Shown: positions 6,379 through 60,248 of the stretch, one piece after another | Layout of the letters: each line of letters starts with the position of its first letter | Position numbering within the stretch: the stretch's first letter is position 1 | Source of the DNA: Pelomyxa schiedti | Lineage: Eukaryota > Protista > Evosea | DNA length: 64,000 nucleotides | Reading direction: 5' to 3' | Assembly (NCBI GenBank): GCA_020536535.1 | Contig: JAHLWZ010000851.1 | Location: forward strand, 1 to 64,000 | The notes under the pieces: generated by a model | What the model saw: only the letters and a program-made list of their open reading frames with translations | Told to the model about the DNA's origin: nothing | Database searches by the model: none | Translations under genes and position numbers: made by a program

Positions 6379-6563
6379 GCCGCCTACCCTTTTATAATAA
6401 ACTTGAACATAACGAAAACCACAAACTGTGATGACAGTTGATTCGGGAATCACCATTCGGTTAATCTGCACCTACCAGGTACAGAATCTAGTTTGATGTC
6501 CCGGACAATACGTCAGGTGCGAGTTTTACAATAAAATAACAATAAAAAAAAAAGCAAAGTACC

Positions 6564-7869
6564 ATGGACGTGGATAACGTACAGAGGGTGGTAGTAGATC
6601 GGAGCAACGCAAGTGGCGGGGGGCCTTTGGATCTACCCCACGCAAGCAGCGGCAGCCGCCATGTGCATCACCACCACCATCGGCACCGCCACGCACACGG
6701 CCAAGATCAGGGCGAGTCGCCGCCGCCGCCGCCGTGCGCGCTTTCTGGCTTGATGGCGCTGTCTATGGCGGCGCAGATGGGGAAGCAGCCGAGTCACGCT
6801 GCTTTCGTGCCGCCCAAGATGGGCTCGTTTGGTTTGCCGACGGCGCTGGAACAGGTGGGGGAGGAGGATGATGGTGATGATGACGATGACATGTCGCCAG
6901 GGTTGCCTGGATTTGCAGAGTTGGTCAAAAACATAGGTTTGGAAATCTTCCATGCGGATTAACACCCACACTAATTACGAAAGGGCCCTCCTCCTCGGAG
7001 ACTCCGGTCGCGGAGAGTCCTTTGAGGGAAGAAATGCATATCAAGCAAGCTCAATTACAGCAACGGCAACTCCTCGCCTTACTGCAACAACAACAGCAAC
7101 AGATACAGCAGCAGCACTTGGTTCAACTCCAGCTCCAGCAACAGCTGGCCATGCAACACCAAGAACAAATGAGAATCCAAATGCAAATCCATCAACGCCA
7201 AATGCAAGTTGAACAAGAAGAAAAACAACGCCTCGAGCGTCTTCGACAGCAACGGATCCAGCAAGAGCTCGAACAACAGCAACAGCTCCTGCAGCAACAA
7301 GAGCAAGCCTCCCCAATAATGTATACAGCTAAAGCAAAGCGAAGGCCACCTAATATGGACAAAAGCAAACTCTACTGCCACCAGTGTGGGAAAAGAGAGA
7401 CTCCAGAGTGGAGGAAGGGTCCTGACGGTCCTGCTACGTAAGTGCATCCTTGCCTCCCCAACCCAACAACCGCTTTAGGTTGTGCAATGCATGTGGCCTC
7501 CAATGGAATACCACAGTGAAAATGATGGCATGCAGGAGTGTCAACCCAGCAACCACAGGTCCTCCCATTCGTGGAGCACCATGGATGCAACACAACCAAA
7601 CACCACAAAGCCCCGCCACCCCCGCAACCCCAACAATGTCCAGTCCCCTCCCACACCGCACGGGCCCAGCTCAAGTCACAGCATCCACTCCCAACAGCTA
7701 CAGCCTTCCAGAACAGCAACACACCAAACCAAGCACTAGTACCACAGCCAGTACAACAACACCCACCCACGCATCGCACTCGCTCAACTTGGGAAAAATC
7801 CTCACCGGGCACGGTATCCTGGAAGCATACCCTGACTCTCTCATCAGTTTTCTTCACCACCGTTCATAG
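6564..7869 (+). CDS. GATA zinc-finger transcription factor with polyQ region
   Basis: CHQCGKRETPEWRKGPDGPAT|LCNACGLQW, split by an intron; upstream Q-rich tract. Confidence 0.92.
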
Positions 7870-7994
7870 AACCTCCTACCTCATCACCGCATGAGGTTCT
7901 TGCCTCTTGTAAAAATACAACCGAATTCTTCTCACCAGCAATTCGTCTGTTCCCAAACTTAAACAAACAGCAAACAAACACACCAAAAGGGACG

Positions 7995-10461
7995 ATGGTG
8001 TTGCGGGTGTTTGTTTTTGTGATAGTGTTGGCCTTAGTCACCACGTGGGCCAATGGCAGGTCTTTCACAATCGACGGCGATTGGTTTGTGAAAGACGGCG
8101 AACAATTTCGAATTGTCTCTGGTGCTGTATGTGAACTTTTATATTTTAAATAATTCCGATGTTATGTTGTTCTGCAAGAGCTTAGTATCTTCTGTTAGTT
8201 CCATTATTTCAGAACACCACCAGAGTATTGGGCGGATAGATTGCATAAGATGAGACTGGGAGGCCTCAATACTGTGGAAACTTATGTGCCTTGGAACTTG
8301 CATGAACTCACACCTGAGACTTATGACTTTGAGGGACTGTTGAACATTGAGGCATTCTTGCAAGCTATCAATGATGAAGGATTGTTGGCAATTGTTAGAC
8401 CATCTCCGTATATTTGCGCCGGTATGTTTTGGGGAGCCTTATAACCTCTGTTGCATTGTTGACTGTGTCAATTTTATTTTATACAGAGTGGGAATTTGGC
8501 GGTCTCCCAAGCTGGCTTCTTTCAAGTGGAAAGCCCATCAGCCTCCGAAACAACAACGACGACTTTGTACCATTTATTGACCGATACTACTCTGTTCTTT
8601 TGCCAAAATTGAAACCGTTCATGTATTCCAGTGGCGGCCCCATCGTAGCAATGCAGGTTGAGGAAAAGTAGATCCTTTTGGAACACCAACATTGAATGCA
8701 GATTGAAAACGAGTACGGCAGCTACGGTAATGACCACGACTATCTAGAACACATGATAGCCACCTATCAGTCCAACGGATTGGACTGCATTTACTTCGCT
8801 TCAAATGGGTTGGTTTGAGAGTTCTTTGTTCACTGTTCACATTTGCGTACAGACCCACCGATCAAGCCCTTCAGGCTGGTGCAGTGGATTCTGTACTCCG
8901 AACCATAAACTTTGGCACTGGCTCGGATCCTGCTCCATTTTTCGAAACTCTTCGCATTTATCAGCCTACTGGACCCTTATTTGTTACAGAGTGGTGGGAT
9001 GGTTGGTTTGATCACTGGGGAGAGGATCATCACACCGTAACTCCTGAGTCGGCGTCAGTAATTCTTGACGAGATTCTGGCTTACCAAAACGCTTCTGTGT
9101 CTATGTAGTATTACACATTTAACTATTGATTGGTAACACTCCTGCAGGTACATGTACACCGGAGGCACGAATTTTAATTTCTGGTGAACACCAGTTTTTT
9201 CACGGCCTTCTAATAACATTCAAAATTCCCTTTTTCAGGAACGGGGCCAATTTCGACAGCTACTATCAACCAACAATTACAAGCTACGACTACGACGCAC
9301 CCATTTCTGAGAATGGTGATGTCTCAGAGAAGTTTTCTGTATTGAGAGATACAATTGGCAAGGTTCTGATTTAGTTGGACGAAACCACAGTTAACCAACA
9401 ACTCCTAGTATATCAGTGTTCCCACAGAAATTCCAGCAGCACTCCCAAAAAAGGCGTATGTACCGATTTGTTTACAATAACAACTACCTCACCTCAATTA
9501 AGTTATGGAAATGTAACAATGCAACCTATTGCCCGTATATTGGACCCGCTTGTTCTAGCTAAGCTGTCTCCAGAAGTTGTTACTTCTCCTCGAACAATGA
9601 CAATGGAGGAGCTCGGCCAAAAGTATTTCCTCTTGTGTCCTTATCGATAATAAGTCCCTTTTAGCTTTGGGTTTGTTTTGTATGAAACCTCTGTTCAAGG
9701 GCCTCTTACCAATGCCGTTGTGAACATCCAAGATTGTCACGACCGCGCTTTGATCTTTCTTGATGGAAAGTATCAGGGGGTGGTTGATCGAGGAACTAAC
9801 GTAGCACCGTCTGTTCGGGTAAGCACGGACACATTGTCCACACTTCAAATCTTGGTGGAAAACGAGGGTCGAATTAATTTTGGTACCTTTCTTGTTCGAT
9901 GATTCCTTCAGCACTTAATATTTTGCAGGACCATATCTGGAAGACTTCAAAGTGTGTCATTCTATTTAGCATCCTGAAGTAACTTAGGGGGAAAAAGGGA
10001 ATAACACAAGGTGTAAGGCTTCCTGATATGTTCCTTTTCGATTGGACTATGTACCCACTGCCGCTGGATAACATTGACGTCTTACCAACATCGTCGTTCA
10101 CTACAACTTCCAACGATCCCGCTTTCTGCCGAGGATACTTCAGTATTCTGAACCCGAAAAACAACCTGTTCTAACATTCAACAGATATTCCCGACACACC
10201 AGTGGATACATTTGTTTCCTTGGAGGGCTGGGGCAAAGGAGTATGTTATGTCAATGGCGTCAACATTGGGCGCTACTGGCCAACAAAAGGACCTCAACAG
10301 GTTCAGTGCTCTATGGAGTATCTGCTATTTCTATTAACTGTTCACAGACACTTTTCCTCCCTGCTCCCTACCTCAAACAAGGCCAGAACGAAATTGTCCT
10401 GTTTGAGCTATCCAAATTTTCTACTTCTATTACTCTGGTGGATACACAAAACCTTGGCTAA
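7995..10461 (+). CDS. Beta-galactosidase, glycoside hydrolase family 35, secreted/lysosomal
   Basis: Signal peptide; [27 protein letters not shown]|[52 protein letters not shown]. Confidence 0.96.
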
Positions 10462-11423: not shown

Positions 11424-13524
11424 CTAGTGGTTGGAGGATCTTTGTTCCATTTTTGTTTTGATTTGGAGAAGAAGCTGGTCCCTTATAATTTGTTGGTTGG
11501 TTTCTATGTTGGTTGGGCTGTTTGAGCTGTGTTTGTTTGTGTTGAAAAAGTATTTCAGTTGTGAGTGGGAAAAAATAATACTGGCGAGGGAGGGATAAGA
11601 TGTTAGTTACCTCTGCAGAGTCTGGATATAGTCCGCCATTGTGGAAGCTACTGATTCCTGCAGGCATTCCATCAAGTCACTGCTGGTGGTTCTTAAGGGT
11701 GGTCAGTCCAAGTGTAAGACTTAGAGGTAGTTTGGGTTGGGGGCTATTTCACCTGATTGCCGTGGACATAGACAGATACAGCTCCTCAAGTTTGGCCCTG
11801 GCGTCGGCGTATTGCGCGATGGACTGTTGATGCGACTCCGCTTGGTCCCATGATTCTTTTGTGCCGGCTTGCGCTGCTGCAATCCGCGCCGTGAGTTCCT
11901 CATGCTGGGTATGAGTCTCGGTGTACCGTGGGATGTTCGCGTGAACGGCGTTTCGCGTGGCGTTCAGTTGAGTGCGCAAATTTGCGTTGTCTTCCGTTTT
12001 CTGCTTGTTGTCGCCTTCCACCTTGAATCCATCGTGAGGTAAGGAGAAATAAGTCAGCGAAAAGGGATGAATTTTGTGATGAAGTGGAAACCTGTTGGCA
12101 ATGTCTAGAGAGCTCAGCCATTTCCCCGTCCCAGCTCATCCTTTGGTTCAGGAGTCTATAAAATTTCAGCCGTAAAAAAAAAAAAAAAAACCACAAAAAG
12201 GGAAGAAGCGTGTGCCTCGTAATTTCCTGTGTAAGGGAATTGACTTTCCGATCCAATTCCGGTTCCTCCTGCTGAAGCTGCTTATATTTGATTTCTTGGT
12301 TTCTAAGCACATCTTGGGTGCTAATTAGAATCTGCTCCAAGTTCACTTGCACTTGATCCTGTGTTGGAACTCAGTTGTGAGTCTTTGGTGCAGGGAACAC
12401 ACATTACTTCTATTTCCTTGCTCCAGCTCTTGCATTTCCCTTTGTATTACTCTCAAATCGGCTTGCAATTGGTTCATCACCTCTAAATGATCATTCTCCT
12501 TTGTTACTGATTTAGCAACTTGCATAACTGCTGCAACCGTGGAAGTTTGAGGAACCTCTACAGTTGGCGTTGAAGTGGGGGCATCCTTAGGATTGGACGG
12601 AGATGGAGCTACAATGGCTTTTGGCTTATTATGACTTGGTTCTGGTGACTTGGCTACATCCAAAGGCATAGAGTTGAATGGTTGTGACTCGGATGCCTGC
12701 GGAGCTTTTGTTATAGTTTGGGGTGCAGTGTCGGGTGCCTGTGGTGCTTTTGGTATGGTTTGGGGCGCAAGGAAGGGCCGAGTAACTTCTGGGAGGATGA
12801 TAGCCGGACTAGGAGGTGCAAGGCTTCTTGGGGAAATAGTTTTTGCGGGAGTTGGGATTGGTATAGGGGTGGGGTAATTAATTTGGTTATTGTATACTAA
12901 AGTTTGGGCTTGATGTGAATTGCTAGGTGGGGTTTGAGAAGGTGAAGGAGTATAATAAGTTGGGGGTAGAGTCAAGGGTTTGGTTGTTCTCCAATCAAAG
13001 GGTGGCTGAGGGAGTACATTGTAGGGGGGCTTTATTACGTCCGGAGGGGTTGGCAGATTGAAAATATCTGTGGCACCTGACTTTTGAGGCTGAGGGGGAT
13101 ACTGGGGTGTTACTGGTTGGACCGTGTAATTCTGGGGGAATGCAGGGTACTGAACAGGTTTTGGAGTTTGTGTGTAAAGTGTTGTAGAAGGTGGTAGTCT
13201 TGTGTAAACTTGGCCTTGTGAATAGGGACCTGACACAGTGGGGATAACAGGAGGTGGAGGAAGTGAGTGCATAGGAGCAGAAGGCGGCATTGTGTTTGTT
13301 CTTATAGGTTGATATCCCGGTTGAAAATAAGGGGGGTAGTGCTGGGTGGGTGATGGTGTTGCCTGATTGAGTGCCTGTGGCGGCGGCAGCGGCTGCTGCG
13401 GCTGATGATGTGGAAACTGCATGGTCATGGGTGGCCCGCGATTCGGAGAGTTGATGGTGGTGGTGACCACATTTGGCAGTACAGGCGGCAATGCTCTAAG
13501 GTTAGAATACGGCTGTGGAGCCAT
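11424..13524 (-). CDS. Pro/Gln/Tyr-rich N-terminus plus long coiled coil; unknown function (3' end approximate)
   Basis: 393-aa Pro-rich first exon followed by heptad-rich exons linked by short GT-AG introns. Confidence 0.6.
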
Positions 13525-14055
13525 AATAGTGGCAGAGTTCCTGCCTGAATTTATTAGACTGGAGTTGCTGAGCCCAAGTGGGTGGGCTGATTTCTTTTTT
13601 TTTTTTTGTGGGGGGAGGTGTTAATGACAGCAGGTCAAGGTAATAAAATCAATGAGAAGGTTGGGGTGTAGGATCAATCAATAGATACCGAGATCTCCAA
13701 CACGCCGGCAGTGGAACAATGCTGTGGTTGCATTGTGGCCAACGCAGACTTCCCGTTATTCCCGTAATTTACTGACCTTGACAGAGGATTTTCGCTTGCG
13801 TTTGTGCTTGGTGGCGGAGGAAAGGGCGTTGCACGGCTCATTTTCTTTTTTGTTTGGGGAAAAAAAACTCAAGTTGAGACGCTGCTGCGCCGAAAAAAAA
13901 AAAAAGTGGTAATTCAGAGGGTATCTGCCACTTGCGTCACCCCAATCATCAATGTAGCGCCAAGGGCGGAGGGCTCTGACCAGTCCAGGTGTGTCGATCT
14001 CCCCTAGGAGTCCGGAAAGGTCCAAGTTGGTGGCAGCAAACAGATCTGGACGAAA

Positions 14056-17000
14056 ATGGAACCAGTCAACAAGAGGGCTCGCACCCCGCGGTGGTCCTCG
14101 TCGTCGTCGGCGAACCCGCCGGCTCCTATTGCAGTCCCGAATCTTGCGGCCCTTCAGACCGCCGCCGCCCATCGCGCTCCGTCTCAGGACCAGAATCAGC
14201 AACACACGCAGGAGGTCACGAACGCAGCCGGCTGCGCGCAGGAGGGAAGGAGAGATGGTGGGCCCGCCGCCGAGGAAATTGATTCCCCGGCGCCTGAGTT
14301 GTCAACGGCGAGTTCGCGCACGACGGAAAGTAGTAGCAGTAGTAGTAGTACAAGAATAAGTGGGAGTGGGAAGATCTCTGCTGGCCCGGCGAGTGCCGTG
14401 ACCACCGGGAGCGACATTGACGTGGATCTTTATAGTAGACAGCTGTATGCCATTGGCGTGGAGGCACAGAAGAAGATGATGTCATCTCGGGTTGTGCTTG
14501 TGGGCTTCACTGCACTTGCTGCCGAAATAGGTTTTCCGCTCACCCTTTTATTGCCGGCAACAATCTAAACGGACCACCAGCAAAGAATTTGGTTCTTATG
14601 GGGGTGCAGGGAGTTACTCTGTACGATTCCGGTTGTGTGGAATTGGGGGACTTGTGCTCTAATGTATGCGAGCGGCATACGAAAACAGCATTTCATTAAA
14701 ATCATTACCAGTTTCTGCTCACTGAGTCCGATATTGGTCGAAAGCGGGGTCAGGTTTGTGCCCAGCGACTGGCTGATCTTAACAACTATGTCTCTGTTTC
14801 CTTCGTTGATAGTTCTTCAGAGACTCTAGAGTCGCTTCTTTCCAATCATCAGGTTTCCTTTCTCGTTCTTGTCTGTGTTGAGGGAAAATTTCACGGTCGT
14901 TATTTGACAGATAGTTGTGGCCACTGGATGTTTCTTGGCTGTAGCTCTGAAAATTAACAAGGTTTGTCGAGCTCATGGGATCAAATTTGTTTGGGCAGAC
15001 ACTCGTGCTTGCTTTTGTTTTGCATTCAACGATTTTGGCCCGGGATTTGCTGTATCAGATAGAACTGGTGAACAACCACATTGTTACAACGTGGCACGGA
15101 TTACTCAGGACAGTTGTGCAACCGTTTCGGTCATTGAGGACCAGGTTGTGGAATTTGAAGAAGGGAGTGGAGCAGTATTTTCTGGAGTAGAAGGAATGGA
15201 AGAAATCAATTTTGATCCCATCAGAAATTCAAAGTCGTATGTCTGTAAAGTCACAGGTCTTTCTATGTTCCAAAGGAAGCCATCCAACATTTTATAGGCC
15301 TGCACGAGATACAAATTGGGGACACTAGTTCTTACCACCCTTACAGCTCTGGTGGTTATATCTCCGAAGTTAAAAAACCTTCCGTGATGGATTTTGTGTG
15401 TCACTCTTCTGCACTTAGTGCCTAATAACTGACTTCGTCGAAAAAGGATTCTCTTGAAGAATCCCTAAAATCACCACGTTTGATAGAGGTAGATTCTTCC
15501 AGGGCAACCAGAAATGCCCAACTTTTTTCTGCGTTCCGGGGCTTGTGGGATTGGGCTGACAGCCATGATGGAACACTTCCTGAATACTTTGACAAGGTCC
15601 GTTGCGCATGCAACGCTCTCTAACTTCACCATATAGAGGCATGCCTCTGAAGTAGCAGAACATGCTAGAAAGTATCAACTTGCAGGAGTGGAAGTAATTC
15701 CTGAACTCAAGCTTTTGTTTAATATTAACACTTGACAGTTCAATGACGATCTCAGCTCCACACTTTCTCACATTTGCCGCGGTGAATTACCCCCACTTGT
15801 TACTTTTCTTGGTGGGGTTGTGTGCCAGGAAGTCATGAAAGCTTGCTCTGGAAAGTACTCACCGATCAATCAAGTAGCGTACCATATGTTATCAATCTTA
15901 CTCTGATATAGTGGCTGCTTTACGATTGTGATGATGTTCTTCCTGGAGGTGGAGATAAACCTTTTGAATTAAGTCCACACTGTCGGTATGAACGTCAGAC
16001 AATGGTGCTAGGAAAAGAAGTTGTGCACGCAATTTTAAATGCCAAGATGTTCCTCGTTGGTGCTGGTGCTATTGGCTGTGAAGTTTTAAAAACGTGGGCA
16101 ATGATGGGTCTTGGTTGTGGCGATAATGGTATCTTTTTCTCACCTTACAAGTTATTACTTATCACCAATAGGAATTGTTCACTTAACTGACATGGATTTG
16201 ATAACTAAATCCAATCTTAGCAGACAATTCTTATTTCGGCCTTCAGATATAGATGTATAGTATGAACTAATTTTTTGTATGCTGACTCTCGTAAATCACA
16301 GAAGCTTAAATCTGAAGTTGCCGCCTCTGCAGCAGTGAAGATGAATGCGTCAATGAAGATCAAACCTTACTCCTCCCGAGTTGGTATTGAAACAGAAAGT
16401 ATGTTATCAAGTTTTATTCTACTGGCAATTCTAAGGAAATCAAGGTACCTTTGATGAAGATTTCTACTCTAGCCTAATTGGTGTCTGCACGGCATTAGAT
16501 AATGTTGCAGCACGTCTTTACATGGACTCTCAGTGTGTGTTATATGGGAAAGCACTCATCGATTCTGGAACTCTTGGAACGAAAGGAAACACCCAAGTTC
16601 GTTTTCTTTCCTTTTATTATCTTTTCGATTCAAAAGTGTCTAGGTTGTGGTGCCTCTCCTCACTGAATCTTATGCATCCTCTCATGATCCCCCTGAGAAA
16701 GGAATTCCGCTTTGCACATTGCATCACTTCCCAAATGTCATCGATCACACAATACAGTGGGCTCGTGATTACTTTGATGGCCTTTTTACTAAGGACCCTC
16801 TTGTTGTGCAATCATATCTCACACAGGCCTCTTATTTAGATGTCAGATGTCCTAATACCTACATTTTTCACCTTACCTTTTCCCAGAATGTGGGGCACCA
16901 ATCTCTCGCCTTGAAAAAAGAAACACTGGAAACACTGAAGACATTACTAGTTACACAAAGGACAAAGAACTTTGTACACTGTGTCAAATGGGCGCGGTTG

Positions 17001-18343
17001 CAGTTCAACCTGATGTTCACTGAAAATATCAAGAATCTTTTATACAATTTTCCTCCCGATTCCCTCACGAATACTGGAGGTAATCTGTCAAACATACCAA
17101 TAATGATGCCTTCCATTAGTTCCATTCTGGCTTGCTCCGAAGAAATGCCCGGCACCCCTTGAATTTGACGTCAATGATTCCACTCATAGGGACTTCATCT
17201 TAGCAGCTGCAAATCTCCGCGCCTTCAATTTTGGCATTCCCTGTAAGTCCACAGCCCCACTTTCATATGTCTTACTGAATGTGTGTAAGCACAAAGCCTC
17301 ACAAAAGGGGAGCTTTCCTCCATTGTTACCGAAGTCATTTTACCTGAGTGGCAGCCTTCAGGAACCATCAAGTTAGACAATACAGAAACTGGAGAAAGCC
17401 ATACTGGTCAATCAGAGCCAACAAATTCTGTCGATCCAGATTTTGATGCTGTTTGCACAACTCTGCAATCAGAAATACCACAACCTTCTGAGTTGAAGAG
17501 CCTAGCCGTTTTACCTTGCGAATTTGAGAAAGTACTATGATTTCCATTTTCGTGGTATTCTTACCTCCTTAGGATGACGATGCCAATTTTCACATGGCAT
17601 TTGTAACTGCAGCATCCAACTTAAGAGCGGCTAACTACAAGATTCCTCCTGCCGATTTTCAACGGACCAAATTAATTGCAGGAAAGATCATTCCAGCCAT
17701 GATATCCACAACTGCCGTTGTAAGCGGGTAAAGCACGCACTTACCTGTCTTCCGATCATGCTAACTCAATTGTTGTACAGATTGCAGTGCATTGAATTGA
17801 TCAAGGTAATCGCTGGAGTCAAGTCCCTCGCCAAGTATCGGAATGCTTTTGTAAACCTTGCACTGCCATTCTTTGCTTTCAGTGAACCCCTGGCGGCACC
17901 ACTAACAGAAGTGCGCAAGGGTTGGTCGTGGTCTATCTGGGAACATATTGACATTAGTGGACTCTCCAATTGCACCTTACTAGAGTTCCTGAATACAATG
18001 AAGGTACCCTTTCCCTTTGTGCTACTAGACACATACCTTCCACCCTCTCACTTTGCATTGCAGGATAAATTCCAGTTAGATGTACAAATGGTCTCCCTTG
18101 GAAATGCCATGCTGTATTCTATGTTTGCCTCTAACCGTGAAAAACTCGGAACCAAGTGCGTGTTCTACGGCCACCTTTGTGGTTGTGTTAATGCTTCCTT
18201 TCAGGATGACAGTTTTGTTTGATAAAATACTGGGACCAGACCCGGCCCGCAAATATGTAATTTTGGGGGTGTCCTGCACCAGGTTGGAGGACGACTTGGA
18301 CGTTGACATCCCCCCAGTATTCTTCTACACCCAGGAGTCCTGA
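14056..18343 (+). CDS. UBA1: Ubiquitin-activating enzyme E1 (Uba1/Uba6 type)
   Basis: [51 protein letters not shown], catalytic [14 protein letters not shown]|[32 protein letters not shown]. Confidence 0.95.
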
Positions 18344-47513: not shown

Positions 47514-48051
47514 TCTTTTTCTTTTTTGTTTGAAACAACAGATTGTTCATTAATCAGGTGAGAGGACGAATTTAAAAGGCTAACAGGCAACTTGCGTAGG
47601 AGTGAGGTCGAGGAGATGTTTGGGTTTGGAGAACCTGGCACGACAGCTAAAAAAATGGATTGTAACTCCCCAAGGCGGTCTGATGAAGTCACACGTGCCA
47701 AACATGTCCTCAGTACCCACCCGAAGTTGCCTGGTTTGGGGAACGGACGCCATCTTCTATCTTCTCTGTACGCGTGGTCGTCGGGGTTACTGTAATGGCG
47801 AAATATAGTTCTCGATTCCTTGGAGAATTCGCGAAGTACTTTCCAGTTAAATCTCCCCCTTGCTTATGAGGAAGTCCGGACTACTCAATCTTCCCAAAAT
47901 GCCTGTTGTCGGAACCGAAGCAGGAGAATGTGGACGAAGCAGATTACCCGCATCCGATGTGAAATTCCGAGGGTTCATAATAAGCAAGCACTTTTTAACA
48001 CCCCACAACCAACAATCTCTTTTCAAAGCAGAAAAAAAAACCCGGGGGTCA

Positions 48052-50260
48052 ATGACAACAGTCAAAGAGTCAGCCGCTGAGGCAGAGAGACCGCTCTCCC
48101 CTCAGTCTTTTTGCACCCCTGGTCCGGTAATCTCGATTCTTGTGAGGGAGGACATCCACCCAAGAAAACTAGCGCAGGTCAGTCAGTCTTTCCACACGGC
48201 TTTTTTCCCTGTGCCTGGCAATCGAACAAACGAATAGTTTCTAATCGTTTTTATAAAGGTAACGCTCAAGTTAAACCGCACATTACGTCTTCAAGCAGCA
48301 ATTTCGGAGCGAGAGGTTTTCAAGCAGGCGTTGTGTGCCGAGTTTCGTACAGCAGGAAGTCTAAAAAGTGCCCGTCCCTTCATATACTTTATAATACACT
48401 TATTTCCTCTTTGCAGAGGCTCAGTGCTGGAGATGCAACCCCGAGACAGGAATAGTGGGGAGATTGTCAATAGACGACCACGAGGCACACTACGAAGGCA
48501 GCACCGACACCGAAGTGTACTGCCTCAAACTCAAATCCATTTGCACATCATCCAGACTTCACATGAAATCAGCGGCTGTTCTCATTATCCCGGGTTTGGC
48601 AGGTCACAACAAAAGCAATCCGTTCAACTTGCGATCCCGCCCAAAAAGTACAGACTTTCCTCTCTTCACCTTCCACTAAAACACCTTGTGTTTGTGCACA
48701 GTGCGAGGCGGTCAGATTTGTCACGACCCAGTGGAAACAACGAAGAACAGCGGAAGCAACGATAACACCCCAGCACCGGTTACAACACCTTCATCAAGTT
48801 CTGCGGACGAATTGTCTGGCCCAGCGACTCCCCAGTTCCCTCTCACAATACCACCCCCATCCACTCCAGCCGTAACTTCGACTTCGACTCCAACGCCAAC
48901 TCTGGGTCAATTGCTGTCGAATTTCCCAGTGCTCTTCGGTTCATTTGGATTCCAGAACTCCACCGATTCGAACCTGTCTGCCACACCACCAACGCGAGAT
49001 AATTCCCCGCTGCTTCACAACAGGTATTCCCCTTCTACACCGGGGAATACTTCCCCCTCGCGAAATACACTGAGCAACCCCTTCCCATTCCTCCCACCGC
49101 AACTTACAACAAATACTTCGCTTCCACTTCCACCACCCCCATCTCCATCCCAATCTCTGTCGCCATCGTCACCCCCTCCACACGGAGTTCTCAATCTCTT
49201 CATAAATTCCCAGAACATTGCCAATGCTCGTCCGCCAAGTACCTCTCACCGCCATTCGCCGACCGTAACTTCTCCATCACAATGCACTTCGACCTCAGTC
49301 CAGACATCTACACCAACACGAGACTTCATACAGCTGCTTTCATCACAACTGAACGCAAGCCCCTCGAACATCACGAATTCCGGACGAACTTATTGCCTCC
49401 CAGGGACTCTTCCGGAGCGCCCGGTCCCCAAGGACAACTCCTCGAATTATGTAACTGATCAGTCAACGCACAACCACATTCAGGATAACCCCGCCTCAAA
49501 CCTAACGAGTCCACCATCAAGTTCAATCGCACAACTTCAAAATACCCTCACATTCAATTCAGCCTCTTCACCCTTATCGGCAAGCCTTCTCAATTTTTGC
49601 AGTTGGAGTTCCGGTTTGCCGATGTTTCCCCTTGACTTCACCTCTCCCGCTTTCCCACAACAAAACACACAACCCCAAAGCACATGGGCTGTGCCAGTAA
49701 AATCATCAGAGACTTCTTCTTTTGAGAGCGAACCAAAAAGACCCAGAATTTCCCAACCTTCGTCCCCCCAAACCACCACCGCCCCTGAAACTCCTCAGGT
49801 TCCGCATATATCGTTCCAAGCTCAGCCCTCCCTGTGCGGAGATATAAGTGCGTGCTCTACTCCTAAGCGCCTTTAAAATTGGGTGGGTATCCAAAAGCTA
49901 AACGCACACTCAGATGGCCAATTACTCATTTCCGTCAAGATAATCCAAGCCGTTGTTCCGTACGACCGAATACCCTTTGCCGATAAATGGAGAAGCAGCA
50001 TGGTCCAGTACGGGCAGGCCCAGTGTGCCAAGAAAGGCGTGATAGAGAAGGCAGTCATAGTCTCCGTCAGAATGGACGACGAGAGGGCAGAGAGACTGAC
50101 CACGTGGGTGAACGTGAGCAACTTTCCCTCGCTGTACCGCGCCTCCCAGTCACTTGTCACTTGGCTGGACTACATGTCCAACACAGTGCCCAACCCCCCC
50201 AGCTTTGACTTTGTCGGCTCAGGCATGGCCAGCTGCGTTGCCTTTGTGACCAATTGGTGA
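48052..50260 (+). CDS. Putative transcription-factor-like protein: N-terminal Cys/His globular domain, ~380-aa S/P/T-rich linker, small C-terminal domain
   Basis: Spliced N-domain ...EAQCWRC...LKSICTSSRLHMK...PFNLRSRPK. Intron 49848-49913 joins the S/P/T exon in frame to GQLLISVKIIQ...FVTNW*. Confidence 0.6.
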
Positions 50261-52314: not shown

Positions 52315-53625
52315 CTAACAATACAATGAGAGAGGCTTCTCTGGCGACAGCCTCCAGGTGGGTTTTCCACCTGATTTCACCCACTTCACCTCCACATCAC
52401 CAATTTTCAGGCTGGTGGTAACATCAAAGATGCCAAAACTCACTGCAAACGTGGTTCCAGCCTCAGGCACCGGCACCAACGGTTGGTACTGTGGCCTCTC
52501 TGTGTAAGGCACAGCTGGGACGGCAATGATTCCAGTTGCTCTACCCAATTGCGGGTTGGATTGCAGTGGGCCAAATGAAGGGAATGACATGCACGGATTC
52601 GCCAAGTCCGCGACGTGGTAAACGTAGAGGGCGGTGCCTTTGTGCACGCAGACGTGTTCTCTGCCGACTACCTCGAGGAAGCAGGGGCGGGTGAAGGTGG
52701 TGGTTTTTCCTGTGCCGAGATTGCAAATGATGTGCTGGGTCCGGGTGCAGCTGATTGTGTACACGTCAGTACCCACGCACATGCAGAGTCCCGGACATAG
52801 CCCAGGGCAATCGCAGCCACAGGCACCGTCGGGAACGTCGATGACCCTCACCACGGAGAAAAGCCGGTTGGTGAAAGTCTGTTCCATATCCACGAATATC
52901 ACGCAGGGGCCTCCCGGTTTCCTGAGCGCCGGAAACACAAGGGTGTTGCTCCTACTGGGATCCTCCCCTTCGAACGTGGGACCGTGCTGCAGCCTGTGCT
53001 GCAAATCGCGCAGCTCCAACTCTCCCCCTAGCTGGCCGCGGACGACTCTCCAGATACGCATCCCATAACTCCAGTGCAGCGCAATCCACATCGTGTTGCA
53101 CACAGCAGATTCTATGCCGTCGTGGAGGGCGGGGACGGTGAGCCCCCCGGCGCCGTCGATGATGCTGTACCTGTTGGGCACTCGGTTGACGCGCTCCACG
53201 GCCAAGAACCGGTCGTGGCCCAGCGCCCCGAGGATCCGCGGCCCCCGCGGGTCGTGCGCCAGGCGGCAGCCGCTGCGCACGACCCCGCCGGACTGGGACA
53301 GCCCCAGGAAGACGTGCACGAGAGCCTCCCTGTTTGGGGGCCGCGGGACGGCCGCCCGCAGGGTGAGGCCCAGCTCGCGGCAGACCCGGCAGACCCCGCA
53401 CGCCCAGAGGGAGTGGAGGGGGTCCCTGAGCACGGGTCGGGGGAGGTGCCGCACGGCGCTGCTGGCCCCGCAGCGGGGGACCAGGGCCCCTACAGCGAGG
53501 GCAAGGAACTGGGAGCGATGCACCTTGCAGTCCACGGAAAACGACGCCGCTGCTTCGTACCTCCCGCCCCAGTCCCTGAGAGACCATGCGTCGTACAACG
53601 GGCCCGTCGGCTCAGGGCCAAACAT
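52315..53625 (-). CDS. Intronless 436-aa hypothetical protein (short helical N-motif followed by beta-rich region)
   Basis: Uninterrupted ORF with ATG at 53625; motif RSQFLALAVGALVPRCGASSAVRHL. Confidence 0.75.
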   Translation of the reverse strand: MFGPEPTGPLYDAWSLRDWGGRYEAAASFSVDCKVHRSQFLALAVGALVPRCGASSAVRHLPRPVLRDPLHSLWACGVCRVCRELGLTLRAAVPRPPNREALVHVFLGLSQSGGVVRSGCRLAHDPRGPRILGALGHDRFLAVERVNRVPNRYSIIDGAGGLTVPALHDGIESAVCNTMWIALHWSYGMRIWRVVRGQLGGELELRDLQHRLQHGPTFEGEDPSRSNTLVFPALRKPGGPCVIFVDMEQTFTNRLFSVVRVIDVPDGACGCDCPGLCPGLCMCVGTDVYTISCTRTQHIICNLGTGKTTTFTRPCFLEVVGREHVCVHKGTALYVYHVADLANPCMSFPSFGPLQSNPQLGRATGIIAVPAVPYTERPQYQPLVPVPEAGTTFAVSFGIFDVTTSLKIGDVEVKWVKSGGKPTWRLSPEKPLSLYC

Positions 53626-53685: not shown

Positions 53686-54789
53686 TTAGAAAGAAGAAAA
53701 TGGGTCTTCTGTGGTGGCTGTAGTGGTAGCAGCGGGTTTTCCAGTGGCGCCGGCATTTTTGCACTCTTGGCACACTCGTTTCCCTTGTAGCATCCATCTT
53801 TTTGTTGGGAATAAAACGGTTAGTAGATACTGTGGGTAACTGTGTCGGAGGAATTGCATACTTGCATACAGCCTCGTTCCCGCACCTGGGGCATTTGGCA
53901 ATACCCTCAGCAGCACGGGTAGCCTCCGCTTTGCGGGCAGCATGGCATGCCGGGCAATATTGCTTCATGTCCACCTCAAAGAACTTGGCCGGGTCTAGAA
54001 TGGACATGCATTTTGCACAGGTGAAGCAGGTTAGGTGAACACGTTCATCGTGAAGAGTGAGGAACTCATTTTCAATGTGTTCACCACATCGGGCACAGGG
54101 TCTCTACGGTTGATATTAGATAGGACCGGTTTATGGGTAGTGTTACTTACGCGATAGCAACCAGAGCACAGAAGCCTGCGTTCACGGTTCAAATACATGT
54201 CATCAGTAGTGACAAGGGATACTCCACATTTGGAACAGTTGTAGCACTGCCAATGCCATGCCAGACCTAGTAAGGAGTCACGAAATGAATACGAATGCCA
54301 AGCAAAAGGCTTGATGTACCAGCCATTTGGGCAACATTGTCACTCTCCCCGATGGGTTGGGCACAGGAGTGGCACTTTTGGTTTGGATCTCTTTTAAGAG
54401 CATCATTGCCACAGGGTGGGCACAGTACTGTCTGGAAAATGAGTTTAGAAAACAGGCCAACCAACAGTCAATTAAAATTTCCAAGGGCACTGTACGAAAG
54501 TACGGTGCCAAAAAAAAAAAAAAAAATAATAAATAAATAAAAAAGAAAAATACACACATTATTGAAGAGAACAAACTGTGCAGCTCCAATCAATACGTTA
54601 CACTTGCTGCACAAGAAGCACTCGTGGTGCCACTTCTGCGGAAATGTTTTAGTCAATTACGCCAGTTAAAAAAAGGGGGAAAGGAGGGTGGAATGATCTC
54701 GTGGATAACAAACAAACCTTGCCCACAGCCTCCACAAACTTCGATGTAGGAGCGATCGGTAGGTTGCACTTTCCACACGTGGCCGCCAT
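53686..54789 (-). CDS. LIM-domain protein (3 LIM domains + C-terminal CxxC..CxxC zinc ribbon)
   Basis: CGKC..|KWHHECFLCSKC..LCPPC; CHSC..WHWQCYNCSKC..LCSGC; CARC..VHLTCFTCAKC..YCPACH; CPRC..|..VCQEC. Confidence 0.93.
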
Positions 54790-54938
54790 TACGTTCGTTC
54801 GTTACGTTTAGTTTAATTCTTGGTTTTTTTTTTTTGTTTGTTTTGTGAAATTATTGTCCACTGAAGTGTCGGTTGCAAATCTGAAAGATTTTTTTTTCTT
54901 TTCATCCTATCAAGTCAACTTGACAGAAGGGTGCTGAT

Positions 54939-57900
54939 TTAATTTCGTTTGCTGAGGGTGATGTCGGAGCGTAGGGTGGTACAGGGAACAATTTCCTTGC
55001 TAATGGGAGTTCCTATGAGGGGTGATGTGTTGTGTGTTTCAAGCCATGTTTGGATAGAGCGGTGGTCATACAAAAACCTAGGGAAGTTGTATCAGGATTT
55101 GGGTGGAAAGCGGGAGATTGATTACCAGTCACTGGCAAAAACGGGGTTCTCCATTTCTCTCCGGGACAATGGACAGATGTATTCAGGATAGTCCGGGCGT
55201 ATGAGTGGAAGACCTTACGTTTGGTTGACGTGGTGAAAAAACTGTGTTTGGGGGCAAACCTGACAGTGTTTCTAAAACGGCCTTGGCCAAATCCTTGACT
55301 TTGAATAGCAAAGAGTTCGCGGCGGGCAACGGTACTCCAAGAGTGAGGAGGTCTTTCTCTGTAAGGTGCAGTAGGGCCCAGCCAGGAAGATCAACTTGTT
55401 CGCAGATGGAATAAGGTAATTTCTGAGATTCCAGCCATTTATGAACCACAGTAGGTGACCATGTGCAAACGAGACGGGGATTAAGGTCATTTGACAATGT
55501 TTCAGTCATTGCAACAGCAAGAGGAGGAGAAACTCGGATATAGCCTGTGTGGCGCAACAGCCAACTTGTGTGCATTAGAAGCTTGCGGTCCAGCAACTTG
55601 GTAACGCCAAGACCATCAAGTATTTGGTCGGTAATTTTATTAAATTGAAGGCCATCGATTCCCTGTGCTTCAAAAGACTGCACATAAGCACTGAGGCCAA
55701 TGTCACGTAAAATCATGGATATTTGTTGAGTGCTAAGTGCTGGTAGCTCCCCAACTTCTTCAAAGTTGCGTACTATCTTGGTTTTGTGTACTTGTGTAGC
55801 ACGCATCAGATCTGCATTGGTCTTTAATGCTATATCTGCCTCTATCCTCATGGCCTGGCCAGCTTCGGTAATTTGAGTGCATAGATTCTCTGCAACAGAC
55901 AAAGATTTCTGACAATCAGAAAGTTTCTCCTGGTCTGAAATTAATGCTTCCTGCAGCATACTTAATATTTCCTCTTTCTCGGCTAGCTGTTTCCGAAGAT
56001 CTATTATCTGACCTCTTACTCGGTTAATACTTTCTCGTCTTTCTTCAATGTCACCAATCTGCTCATCAACCTCAGTAGCTCTCTTTTCTAGAGTAGACTG
56101 TGCGCGGTTTGAGGCTGCAGTGAGATGGTCGAGAGTTAGTAGGGCTGCCGTAGCTTTGGCTGTAGGACCAGTGCTGGTTGCATTAAGGAAAGAGTTCACA
56201 ACTGGAGGCATTGTGAGCGTTGGTTGTAATATTGTTGTATCTGTGTTCAGTGTTTCAGTGAAGAAGTTCAGTGTAGTGGAGACGGCCTCAACAATTTCTT
56301 CCATTTTGGGTAGTACAGGGAGATTGGTTGCTTGTACTGCCACCCATGGAATGTGTTGTGGTGGAGGGGAGGGAGCACTCCGGAAGAGGCTATGTATTTC
56401 TGTGTTGGTTGAGTTGCTTAAACAATCAAGTGGTGTTTTTCCGCCGATATTCTGGTTGAAATGTAAGAGCATTGAAAGCATCCTTTGAATGATACTTTGA
56501 TTCTGTAGTCACTGACACGCAGTAAAATCTGGACCATTTTCGGTAGTTCCAACTTGCATGCAATATGTAGAGGAGTCTGATAATGGTAAAAACTATGTGT
56601 CACTTATTTGATACTTACGTCTCCCTACATGGAATTAGAGGATAAAAAAAAGAATTATTCACTTACAAGCTGTGCATGTCCAGGGAAAAAAAGAGGTACA
56701 ACAATTAATAAAGAAAAAATCAAATAGGTCACTTACTCCCTAAAGAGTGGTGTGAAATTGCTTGGCAACTAATGATGAACTTACGTTCTTCAAGCCAGAA
56801 AGGGAAAGGAAGAGTCCAAAAATTAAATTTGTTTTTTTAAAAAAAACAGTAAGTCCTCATTGAAGTGAGAATTACATACAATCTGGTGGAAAGTTAGAAG
56901 TTTTTATTATGTGTGGGAGTGTACCCCCTAAAAATCAATAAAGAAGGTATTATCAGATCGTACAGAAACGAGAAAAATGTCAATAAATAAAAATAATGAA
57001 GATGCTGACAGACCCTCTGAAAGATTGTGAATGAAACTTAAAGAAAACGGGACATACAATCTGAACACAATCATTGATCAAGTTGACCAATGTCAAATGA
57101 GAACAAAAAAATAGATACAAGAAGAATTACCCGCTAGGAGAGGAAAAAAGGCATATGTTAGCATTAAAGAAATAAGAAGATGGCCTTACCATCTAAGTTG
57201 CCCAATAGAACCGAAGCAAGGGGGAAAAAAAAAAAAAACCTATCAGTAAGAAAACACCTTAGATCATACATACAATCTTTTAAGGAAGCCACCAGAATGA
57301 AGAAACGAATTAGTAGAAATAATAGAAATTGATATCATACTTCCTGAGGAAAAGTTAATTTAAAAAAAAAAGGAATATTTAACTTACTCCCTAATTGGTG
57401 TAGTAGAACCAATTCCTTTAATCAGAAAACATACTATAAATCATGACATTACATACATACTTGAAAAGTGAGAAAAGAAGAAAAGGAGTTGAAAGCACAC
57501 AGTCTGTTTGTTACAAATGGCAGCAAGTAGGCAAGAAGTGAGAAATTTAGGTCAAAAATCGAAGAAGGTACTTACTCCCTTAAAAAAAACCTGTTAAAAG
57601 GAGATAGATAGTGATGGCACATACAGGCTATGTGTTGGGCAGAGCAAAGAGAATAAGTTGTTTTGATAAGTTACAACAGAAAAAATTTAGTTGAGCATAC
57701 TTTCTGCAGGAAAGAGAGTCAGAATACTGAAAAGACTAAAGAAGAGAATGAAATTGGCATACTATCTGAAGCAAACAGTTAAAAAACTAAAGTAAATGGG
57801 TATGGAAAGTACCTGCAGATTTGGATTTGCCCTAAACTTGAGGAGTAGTTCCACCATTTCTGGGAGATTTCGTGCTACAGCCACATGCAAATGGGTCTAC

Positions 57901-58176
57901 TAAAATTAAAAAACCAAAAGAGTGGTTGTTGCACAGTACCGATCCGCCCTGTAATCGCCAAAGGGAGGAGAAAGAAAAAGGTGTTATTGTGGCAAAAATA
58001 AAATCAACCAAAAAAAAAAAAAAAGAAAAGCTAAAGCAGAAACGCACTCTCATGTAGTCATCAGGGTCGACGTTACGCAGCAACCACCCGGTGACCTCCG
58101 AAAGATCGTTGTTCGCCACCGCATTGCACAACAAAAATCTGTTCTTTTGAAACACCGACTCTGAGATCCCGCTCAT
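54939..58176 (-). CDS. Ankyrin repeat - coiled coil - SAM - SAM - U-box protein (putative E3 ubiquitin ligase) containing a micro-exon array
   Basis: ANK: LCNAVANND, THLHVAV..VELLLKFRANPN, TPLHIAC, GKTPLD. Coiled coil follows. SAM1: LRDIGLSAYVQSFEAQGIDG..LGVTKLLDR. SAM2: WSPTVVHKWL..LLHLTEKDLLTLGV. U-box: EYICPLSRREMENPVFASD|WFLYDHRSIQTWLETHNTSPL..IVPCTTLRSDI. Confidence 0.9.
56619..57765 (-). other. Array of 18 single-codon (3-nt) exons plus one 6-nt exon
   Basis: Each is AG|NNN|GT on the minus strand, in transcript order: ATA 57765-63, AAA 57703-01, CCT 57627-25, GGA 57578-76, ACT 57503-01, TAT 57459-57, GGA 57390-88, GAA 57343-41, ATT 57276-74, ATG 57192-90, CGG 57133-31, ATT 57060-58, AGG 57016-14, GGG 56927-25, ATT 56882-80, AAC 56787-85, GGA 56739-37, CTT 56669-67, then GGAGAC 56624-19. 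Translation: IKPGTYGEIMRIRGINGL-GD. Confidence 0.9.
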
Positions 58177-58346: not shown

Positions 58347-60248
58347 TTAGTCCTTGGAGGCTGAGGCGTGTTCAAATGTAGTCGAGCTGTTGGATTCTGC
58401 AATAATTCTGGAGAGAGGTGATGTGGGTTTTGCCATCGTCCCCCCTGTTCCTGAGGTTGTTATGTCACTGATGAGGGCTGGGTGTTGTTGGTGTAGTGGT
58501 AGTTGGTGGTGTTCTTGCTTAGTAGAGCCAGCAGCGGCGGTGGGGCTAGACGGCAGGGGCAACTCCAGGGGCTCGCACCTGAGCAGGCTGCCGGCCGCGG
58601 CCCCCGTGGGCGCGTTGGGCGGCAGCGTCGGGCTCGCGGGCAGGTTGATGAGCGGCGGCAGGGTCACCCCGCTGTTGAAGATGAGGGACTGCGTGGTGGT
58701 GCGGGGCACCAGCGCAATCACCCCTGGGCTGTGGGCCCGCTGCGGCGGCGGGGGCGGCGGCGCCGCCGGGGTCGAAGCGGGGGGGGCCTGCTTGGTGCCG
58801 CAGCCGCCGCCCCCGCCGCCGCTGCTTTCCTCTTTGAGGGGACTGGAGTCGGGCAAGGACTTGGCGGTGGGCACGTGGATGCCGCCGGACGAAGGAGGGG
58901 GAGGCTCCATGGTCAGGCTTCCTCCCCTAATGCTCATGTTCATGGTCATGGTCATGGGGGGGAGGGCGGCGCTGTCCGGGAGCGGCAGGATTGGGGGGAA
59001 TGGAGGGGAGGCTGTTGAGTTCTGCAACGGCATGAGTATCTGGGGCAAAACCGGGGAGTTGGATTGTGGGTGTATGAGCTTGGATATGGAGTTCGAAGAG
59101 ACCTGCGGCGGGTTCGGCAACGGCATCGTCGGCGCCGGCGCCGGCGCTTCACTTGCAGGAGGAGCTGTGACGGCAGTAGTTTCGGGCGGGGATGCTTGCT
59201 GGCGTTTCTTGCCCCTGGGCTTCGCATCCGCCTTTTTTCTCTTCGCAGTATTTGGTTGCTGAGGGGCTGCTGCGGAACTAGCTGTCGTGTGTGATGCGGC
59301 TTGGTCGTCAACGGCCTGTGTGACATCACCCTGTGCTGCATGCTCTTCTTTGGATTCACTGCTGGTGGGCTTTCTTTTACGTGATGTAGTACTTGCAGAT
59401 TTGTGAGCCCTTTCTTTCTTTTCTGGTTTTTCAGAGGGGGGAGGCTCCGCAGGTGGGTCTGGAATTTTGTCTGCAATCTCGGAAAGGAAATCAAATAAAA
59501 CGTTCGTTTTCAAGCACTCTTTCCTAAAGGCATCCACAAACAAGCATTAATGATGTGTACAACATCAAATTAGCACATACAAGTGGGATGGTGCAATTGT
59601 ATAGCTCTGATGACGTTGGGCTACAGCACACGCCTGCAGTACCAAATCACGTAAAAACAGTTCTACACATTTGGCTGTTGGATTTCTAGTTAGTTTGATG
59701 ATAATATAAGTTGATATTTTAATCAGAAAAAGATAATCTGAAAAATGAAAAAGCACTTACACACGAGAATCGGAGTTGCTGTGGCAAGTTTCCCAACATC
59801 TTCATCAGATTGCATAATTCTCTTAATTCTCGTCTGCCCAAGAAAGATCAGAAAGAGAACGAAAATGAACATAAAAGTTCAATCCACTCGAGATATCTCG
59901 CTATTATTATCGCATATCACCACGTAAAACAACATAAACAGAGCCAAAAATACACACCGACGGAAACGCCGTCACTCGCGACTTGCGGTGGTGGACCTCG
60001 TGCTCCTGGCTCGGCGTTTGTCCCATAATTGCCGGTGCCCCAGCCCCAGTAGGAGGCGGTGGCGGCTGCGTCGTTGTAGTAGTGGTGCTAGTCGTCGTGG
60101 TGGTGCTGCTCGCGACGGCAGCCGCCGTCGCCGTAGCCTCGCCCGCCGCGTCGGCTTTCGCCCCTCGCGTCCTGCGTCCCCTCGTAGCCGTAGCACCCGA
60201 GGCCGCAGCGTCGCTTTTTGCTCCACGTCCACCTCGTCCTCTTCTCAT
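58347..60248 (-). CDS. DRAP1: NC2-alpha/DRAP1 histone-fold protein with RG-rich N-terminus and Pro-rich tail
   Basis: RIKRIMQSDEDVGKLATATPILV|.KCVELFLRDLV...IAPSHL|KECLKTNVLFDFLSEI. Confidence 0.9.

Follow-up and report, generated by a model that had tools for sequence, protein, structure and literature searches.

The window analysed here is a stretch of 64,000 nucleotides from the archamoeba Pelomyxa schiedti (assembly GCA_020536535.1, contig JAHLWZ010000851.1, positions 1 to 64,000 of the forward strand), and the gene under study occupies positions 54939 to 58176 on its minus strand. This archamoeba is anaerobic and bears symbionts, and its genome is rich in introns, with 7.4 per gene (PMC8887013). 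The gene is predicted to encode a WDSUB1-like U-box ubiquitin ligase with an N-terminal head of ankyrin repeats (ANK), and between the second and third of these repeats it was found to carry a run of 17 exons of one codon each, closed by an exon of two codons.

Gene structure

The gene extends from an ATG at 58176, the first ATG after a stop, to a stop codon at 54939. The database protein of the locus, Pelo_12621 (P0001, 486 residues), was identified as a match at 97% identity to a 432-residue open reading frame (ORF) at 55183-56481 on the minus strand, and GenBank places it at 54939-56537 of JAHLWZ010000851.1, a numbering identical to that of the window. A word-based protein search with the 432-residue ORF returned only this GenBank protein itself, and no paralogue was detected by tblastn elsewhere in the 64-kb window. 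The GenBank model begins at a Met within ankyrin repeat 3 (ATG 56537) and therefore lacks the first two ankyrin repeats and the array of one-codon exons; between 56538 and 58346 the GenBank annotation is empty. Exons were analysed one at a time, alongside the database protein, to which all residue numbers below refer. Translated exon by exon, exons 3 to 6 reproduce it residue for residue, both split codons included. The reading frame is open through six exons and all micro-exons, and the locus probably encodes a single protein of approximately 580 residues.

Exon 1 (58048-58176; 43 codons) supplies the start codon and ankyrin repeat 1, the N-terminal cap, and ends at a donor GTGCGT. It has an ankyrin-like helix pattern and aligns with the N-terminus of two Mastigella proteins (P0006 and P0156), with no Pfam match of its own. 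Intron 1 holds a candidate 9-nt micro-exon encoding Gly-Gly-Ser (57940-57948), placed as AG/9 nt/GTACTG after a pyrimidine tract; an equivalent 9-nt candidate was seen in the same intron of a homologue from an environmental eukaryote (L005, described below) and none in the Pelomyxa paralogue (L002). Exon 2 (57813-57896; 28 codons) encodes ankyrin repeat 2 and the array follows at 57765-56619. Exon 3 (56496-56576; 27 codons) encodes ankyrin repeat 3, with its acceptor directly before the TPLH motif, and contributes residues 1-14 of the database protein. The intron behind it is 44 nt in length (56495-56452; GTATCA..AACCAG) and is needed to reproduce that protein; a 34-nt intron at this place in the first hand model was ruled out on the same ground.

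Exon 4 (55260-56451; residues 15-411) is the largest and encodes ankyrin repeat 4 (a cap), a linker, a probable coiled coil and two SAM domains. It is followed by a 46-nt intron (55259-55214; GTTTGC..CGTAAG) which splits a Gly codon, as in the database protein, then by exon 5 with the first half of the U-box (55126-55213; residues 412-441), a 48-nt intron within the U-box (55125-55078; GTAATC..CCCTAG) and exon 6 with the second half and the stop codon (54939-55077; residues 441-486). The initial annotation had noted that the U-box becomes visible once two short introns are removed, and this held good, as both have GT..AG ends and their exons reproduce the database protein. That the U-box exons belong to the same coding sequence is borne out by the GenBank model, by the complete Mastigella transcripts P0006 and P0156 and by a transcript contig of the L005 homologue.

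Array of single-codon exons

Between exons 2 and 3 there are 17 sites at which an acceptor AG, three nucleotides and a donor GT follow one another directly, and then one such site with six nucleotides. The 3-nt exons start at 57765, 57703, 57627, 57578, 57503, 57459, 57390, 57343, 57276, 57192, 57133, 57060, 56927, 56882, 56787, 56739 and 56669 on the minus strand, and the 6-nt exon lies at 56624-56619. In order they encode I K P G T Y G E I M R I G I N G L, then G D, with no stop codon among the triplets; the weaker sites are CCT at 57627 and ACT at 57503. The introns of the array measure 41-130 nt, similar to the other introns of the gene, and its donors are mostly GTAAGT or GTATGT, stronger than those of the gene's ordinary introns.

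The spacing was compared with the surrounding DNA. Of the 18 GTAWG donors within 56585-57812 (1228 nt, minus strand), 14 follow an AG at a distance of exactly 3 nt; all other spacings between 0 and 15 are seen once or never, and the opposite strand of the same stretch has no AG-GTAWG pair at spacing 3. The remaining 54 kb contain 4-7 spacing-3 sites per strand, corresponding to approximately 0.1 expected for a stretch the size of the array. The array is thus far beyond chance. Tandem Repeats Finder reported no tandem repeat in it, and only the micro-exon and splice-site cores recur.

The array falls at the beta-hairpin finger which joins ankyrin repeat 2 to repeat 3. The Gly-x usually standing before the TPLH motif comes from the final 6-nt exon, and when all exons are used the loop gains the 19 residues listed above.

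It could be supposed that these sites are untranslated, serving as stepping stones or decoys for the removal of a 1.2-kb intron and being skipped in the mRNA. Such an intron would be unusual, as the other introns of the gene are 44-48 nt and the genome is adapted to very short introns, and a short form of the loop does exist in Mastigella. However, stepwise use of AG/NNN/GT sites leaves three bases in the mRNA each time, and true recursive sites have spacing 0. Recursive splice sites with the acceptor abutting the donor were ruled out here, as spacing 0 was seen 0 times and spacing 3 was seen 14 times. The comparative data below bear further on this supposition.

Arrays in paralogues and in another species

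A second P. schiedti locus (L002, JAHLWZ010000530.1:190940-208767) contains three further arrays, whose sites number 31 on the gene strand against none on the opposite one. Each array sits between small 'ankyrin genes' and a U-box gene, and the three small genes (91-99 residues; 5826-6297, 14390-14749 and 16679-17114 of the locus) are the 5' exons of the U-box genes downstream. The GenBank model of the paralogue Pelo_6819 (P0016) in this locus also starts inside an ankyrin repeat. The array that was read through ends, like that of the window gene, in a 6-nt Gly-Asp exon. The units of the L002 arrays are clear tandem duplicates of approximately 100 nt in which the splice sites are nearly invariant and the codons variable, which suggests that the units are being duplicated and changed. 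Positions 1 and 2 of these codons are about as variable as unconstrained intron columns, so that neutral change and diversifying selection are not separable here.

Within L002 the three ANK-U-box paralogues are interleaved on one strand with three ANK-protein-kinase genes. The initial annotation had raised the question of paralogues and of other effectors joined to the same micro-exon ankyrin module. All three ANK-U-box paralogues carry arrays, whereas no micro-exon arrays were found in the ANK-kinase genes of L002, and in the control loci L003 and L008, which hold SAM-only paralogues, micro-exon sites were at background. In the second L002 paralogue (14387-16509) the ankyrin part runs almost straight into the U-box, without the coiled coil and both SAM domains; it is a deletion derivative with parts read in shifted frames, and may be a pseudogene.

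A homologue with 40% identity in the C-terminal module was found on an environmental eukaryote's contig in an ENA metagenome (L005). In it, some 19 micro-exons form an array at the corresponding position; the intron sequences are unrelated to those of Pelomyxa, and the U-box is interrupted where it is in the window gene. The exact 3-nt size has therefore been maintained in four Pelomyxa arrays and in another species despite unrelated introns. A Logan contig assembled from a sequencing run (L007) matches the L005 locus with six introns removed and two retained. It joins three neighbouring exon pairs directly, namely TGG to the next micro-exon AGA at the contig start, TAT to AAC, and GAT to exon 3 (counted as four single-codon exons and one exon 3), and the five consecutive micro-exons visible in it are all included. 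The U-box intron is spliced out as well. Splicing-in of single-codon exons, with neighbours all included, is thus directly documented in RNA of the L005 eukaryote. Alignment of the contig with L005 7484-9192 showed the removed introns to be just 35-41 nt, and the U-box intron to lie at the same codon as the 48-nt intron of Pelomyxa. A further sequence (L009) turned out to be genomic DNA and was uninformative on splicing.

In Mastigella eilhardi, the complete transcript P0156 encodes a 23-residue insert exactly at the loop between ankyrin repeats 2 and 3, and its length and composition resemble those of the predicted all-included loops. When four loops were pooled, Gly made up 23% of the residues, Leu 18%, Asp 12%, Ile 11% and Tyr 10%.

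Recurrence in the paralogue locus, background counts at the control loci, the L005 array and the exon joins of L007 are four lines of evidence that the array is a real, used gene structure, to which the Mastigella loop is added. The supposition that it is skipped is highly improbable: it does not account for the exact exon size kept among unrelated introns, the micro-exons joined in RNA or the translated Mastigella loop.

The loop is almost entirely different in sequence between paralogues and species, at a length of 19-23 residues. The initial annotation had described a hypervariable ankyrin module able to give a library of ligases from one locus; strong differences between paralogues and species were found, but many isoforms from this locus were not confirmed. 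The latter part would correspond to a model in which the one-codon exons are combinatorial cassette exons, one locus giving many loop variants and ligases with different targets. As all 17 exons are symmetric (3 nt) and contain no stop codon, any subset would stay in frame. Splice-site strength varies along the array, the L007 array introns were removed in no fixed order, and the Mastigella proteins P0006 and P0156 have loops of 3 and 23 residues under one Trinity gene, with identical C-terminal parts. However, these two proteins also differ by 22 substitutions elsewhere in their first 180 residues, becoming identical only afterwards; because of these flanking substitutions they fit better as a pair of copies or alleles that assembly had partly fused than as splice forms. 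No further isoforms were found in a protein search with the Mastigella ankyrin region as query. Set against cassette use are also the uninterrupted inclusion of the visible micro-exons in L007, the lack of conserved docking- or selector-like RNA complementarity in the window array (its inverted repeats being A/T-rich low-complexity matches) and the lack of Pelomyxa transcript fragments among the protein collections searched. Combinatorial use is consequently considered unlikely, and default inclusion of most or all micro-exons is preferred below.

Domain composition and predicted structure

The order of ankyrin repeats, coiled coil, two SAM domains and U-box given in the initial annotation is agreed upon by Pfam, AlphaFold, Foldseek and the family alignment, the Pfam scan of the single exons and of the database protein finding Ank, SAM and U-box. 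Exon 2 passes the Pfam threshold for Ank (26.2 bits, E 8.6e-6, cut-off 21.1), and exon 3 scores 21.8 bits for Ank_3, just below its cut-off of 22.3, and 20.9 bits for Ank. Repeats 1 and 4 were identified from their pattern and from alignment with Mastigella P0006 (Ank_2 E 1e-11) only. At least two tandem repeats of the 33-residue ankyrin type are thus present.

The linker after repeat 4 leads into a long helix (approximately residues 110-245; 55759-56166), probably a coiled coil. It is predicted by AlphaFold with a predicted local distance difference test (pLDDT) of up to 93, shows weak Pfam matches to coiled-coil families and has an elevated crude heptad score at approximately 111-210. The single-sequence AlphaFold model of the whole database protein was poor (pLDDT 47) and was used for this helix only. 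SAM domain 1 (residues 254-308; 55570-55734) is well recognised by Pfam (SAM_1 E 6e-12 at residues 256-308; SAM_2 E 3e-10) and is modelled as a helical bundle with pLDDT >90. SAM domain 2 (residues 344-404; 55282-55464) aligns with the second SAM of homologues and is modelled as a second helical bundle. The Pfam U-box match spans residues 421-480 with 22.6 bits (PF04564, cut-off 21.4), rising to 26.3 bits when residues 400-486 are scanned alone, and sequence matches in the PDB were to the U-boxes of LubX and of plant PUB proteins.

AlphaFold modelling of residues 225-486 on a family alignment of 21 sequences (A1), on which the model depends, gave two helical bundles and a U-box with a pLDDT of 84.9. 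In Foldseek the bundles matched the tandem-SAM structures of liprin, SARM1 and CASKIN2, and the C-terminal domain matched the U-boxes of CHIP, OsCIE1, PUB13 and LubX with target template-modelling (TM) scores of 0.70-0.83, in keeping with a U-box fold, which comprises two loops, a beta hairpin, a central and a C-terminal helix and has no zinc ligands. No Pfam match to RING or B-box was obtained in any exon or in the database protein, and none to WD40, the N-terminus being ankyrin.

The WDSUB1-like family

An exhaustive profile-free search with residues 230-486 returned 1466 proteins at E<=0.001, of which 45 reached E<=1e-10. Many of these 45 align in a single stretch across both SAM domains and the U-box (query residues 20-252), as expected of a WDSUB1-like SAM-U-box module homologous as one unit. 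Judged by sequence, the SAM-SAM-U-box module shares homology with a family found across Archamoebae and in other protists, whose N-termini consist of ANK, WD40, LRR, Sel1 or FAN1. The Mastigella proteins P0006 and P0156 share the complete order of ankyrin repeats, coiled coil, two SAMs and U-box, the Mastigamoeba balamuthi versions are headed by WD40, Sel1 plus WD40, or LRR, and other matches bear one or two ankyrin repeats or a FAN1 nuclease. In one of the relatives (P0025, 2447 residues), a C-terminal SAM and U-box of this family occur together with FAN1 nuclease domains and a phosphodiesterase domain.

In animal WDSUB1 the order is WD40-SAM-U-box, and two SAMs without WD40 are present in a Monosiga relative; bona fide WDSUB1 has been described as confined to animals (PMC3087547). 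With an ankyrin N-terminus and no WD40, the product of the window gene is therefore classed as WDSUB1-like and not as WDSUB1, that is, as a predicted WDSUB1-like U-box ligase with an ankyrin head. By descent it stands apart from TRIM ligases, which are defined by RING, B-box and coiled coil at the N-terminus, since no RING or B-box was found; the TRIM comparison made in the initial annotation accordingly gives way to WDSUB1-like U-box ligases as the closest kin.

Predicted function

The most probable interpretation is that the gene specifies a WDSUB1-like U-box ligase with a four-repeat ankyrin substrate-binding end, whose finger loop is built from one-codon exons that are mostly or all included. 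In such a protein most or all micro-exons would be spliced in by default to give a finger loop of approximately 19 residues with a high content of Gly, Ile/Leu, Tyr and Asp, and this loop would form the main contact surface for the target on the ankyrin face. The coiled coil and tandem SAMs would form dimers or higher oligomers, and the U-box would recruit a charged E2, leading to ubiquitination of the bound target or of the ligase itself. Comparative anatomy suggests that 'codon plus intron' units are gained by duplication, lost, or altered in their codon, so that the loop would evolve in one-residue steps and its length and sequence would diversify fast between paralogues and species. Loop variability would then be evolutionary, with isoform variability as a possible addition.

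Several observations weigh against this interpretation. No Pelomyxa transcript fragment was found in the protein collections (queries: the 432-residue ORF and residues 1-160 of the database protein), and inclusion of each micro-exon in the window gene is therefore predicted only; Mastigella P0006, with only 3 loop residues, indicates that short forms exist. Oligomerisation, E2 binding and substrate binding are drawn from family knowledge only, and the second SAM is below the Pfam threshold (SAM_1 19.4 bits, cut-off 23). The U-box of the window gene moreover diverges more than any other member of alignment A1. A Gly found in at least 90% of the family is replaced by Trp, in the codon that the 48-nt intron interrupts, and the family's Glu-Arg is replaced by Asp-His (altering the Tyr-Glu-Arg of the family); the first loop holds charged residues, and its Pfam score is barely over the threshold whereas homologues whose scores were read gave 44-72 bits. 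Ligase activity may therefore be reduced or lost.

These features would also suit a copy that is decaying or non-catalytic, a pseudo-ligase, scaffold or pseudogene that would not transfer ubiquitin any more but may have retained binding and oligomerisation through its ankyrin and SAM parts. The family does decay, as the L002 paralogue which has lost its coiled coil and SAMs testifies, and the U-box of the paralogue Pelo_6819 looks canonical beside the divergent one of the window gene, so that a pseudo-ligase keeps some weight. On the other hand, the frame is open over its full length, the predicted structure of the U-box is confident and shows the U-box fold, and all ten columns invariant in A1 are kept, including Pro, Cys, Pro, Val, Asp, Tyr, Trp, Ser and Pro. 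Loss of catalytic function is judged distinctly unlikely, and a ligase remains the favoured product of the gene.

As to the biological role, the initial annotation had proposed an immune or surveillance receptor. Pelomyxa houses bacterial and archaeal symbionts (PMC10579272), and local gene clusters, fast-changing loops and an endosymbiont-bearing host are circumstantial points only; an immune or surveillance role for the ligase is speculative. In its most far-reaching form the array would act as a splicing-based diversity generator, in which subsets of the 17 exons (up to approximately 10^5 in-frame combinations) would provide single cells with a repertoire of finger loops on an oligomerising U-box ligase that recognises and tags intracellular bacteria, archaeal symbionts or viruses. 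This appears very doubtful; if true, it would represent a protist recognition repertoire evolved independently of animal systems, and any additional combinatorial use of the exons would amount to a new kind of recognition repertoire.

The predicted ligase extends the little-studied WDSUB1-like U-box family, and within the Archamoebae one SAM-SAM-U-box module is seen combined with many recognition domains. The main surprise is the gene structure, as long runs of one-codon exons recur among paralogues and in two or more species, and their splicing is seen in RNA of a relative. It follows that long series of 3-nt exons are within the capacity of a spliceosome. Such exons escape standard annotation and read mappers, and both GenBank models checked start within an ankyrin repeat. 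The arrays suggest a route by which a binding loop may be altered one residue at a time, through duplication or loss of 'codon plus intron' units.

Neighbouring features of the window

Upstream of the gene, an annotated protein of 544 residues (58347-60248, minus strand) has a histone-fold-like start, which presumably resembles DRAP1/NC2-alpha, followed by a long Pro/Ser/Ala-rich tail; its sole Pfam match is a weak one to DUF755 on the tail. The downstream neighbour (approximately 53690-54790, minus strand) is a LIM-domain gene (annotated 243 residues, PF00412) whose Cys/His-rich exons appear in the ORF list. Beyond it, at 52315-53625 on the minus strand, lies a GC-rich ORF of 436 residues with no Pfam match and with long overlapping ORFs in other frames, as expected at 57% GC. 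Composition outliers in the window are 6001-8000 (AT skew +0.32, GC skew -0.16), 12001-14000 (GC skew +0.29) and 48001-50000 (GC skew -0.30).

Comparison with known systems

The domain architecture is new within a known family. Like WDSUB1 and WDSUB1-like proteins, the predicted product has SAM domains directly before a C-terminal U-box and a repeat-type binding domain at its N-terminus. WDSUB1 itself has a WD40 propeller, while the window protein has ankyrin repeats, an extra long coiled coil and two SAMs, and a micro-exon array, which is not known in WDSUB1; its Mastigamoeba relatives have the order WD40-SAM-SAM-U-box. CHIP/STUB1 shares with it an N-terminal helical-repeat domain, a central helical dimeriser and a C-terminal U-box (target TM-score up to 0.83), but its repeats are TPRs which bind chaperone tails, it is without SAMs and it is not close in sequence.

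The layout of a solenoid sensor, a tandem-SAM hub and a C-terminal effector is also that of SARM1 (ARM repeats, tandem SAM, TIR), whose SAM1-2 structures match the model. The effector of SARM1 is a TIR NADase in place of a U-box, a coiled coil is inserted in the window protein, and the resemblance is structural and architectural only. TRIM ligases follow the same logic of an E3 domain, coiled-coil oligomerisation and a variable recognition domain; in the window protein, however, the domain order is reversed, a U-box replaces RING, B-box and SPRY are absent and no homology was found. In designed ankyrin repeat proteins the varied positions lie in the beta-turn/finger loop and the first helix. 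The residues encoded by the array are inserted in the same region, but the loop has a fixed length in the designs and is approximately 16 residues longer here.

For the single-codon exon run no precedent was found in the literature: no report of 17-20 consecutive single-codon exons was met with in the searchable literature, the closest case being three consecutive micro-exons in RPS24 (PMC12207440). Micro-exon systems, including 3-nt exons in animals and plants and those of RPS24, have in common with the window gene very short, symmetric exons that keep the frame; they differ from it in that here 17-20 consecutive one-codon exons all fall within one loop of one domain. Short symmetric exons or tandemly duplicated units which alter a binding surface are also known from the micro-exon genes of Schistosoma and the exon arrays of Dscam1, the arrays of Dscam holding whole-domain exons that are used one at a time.

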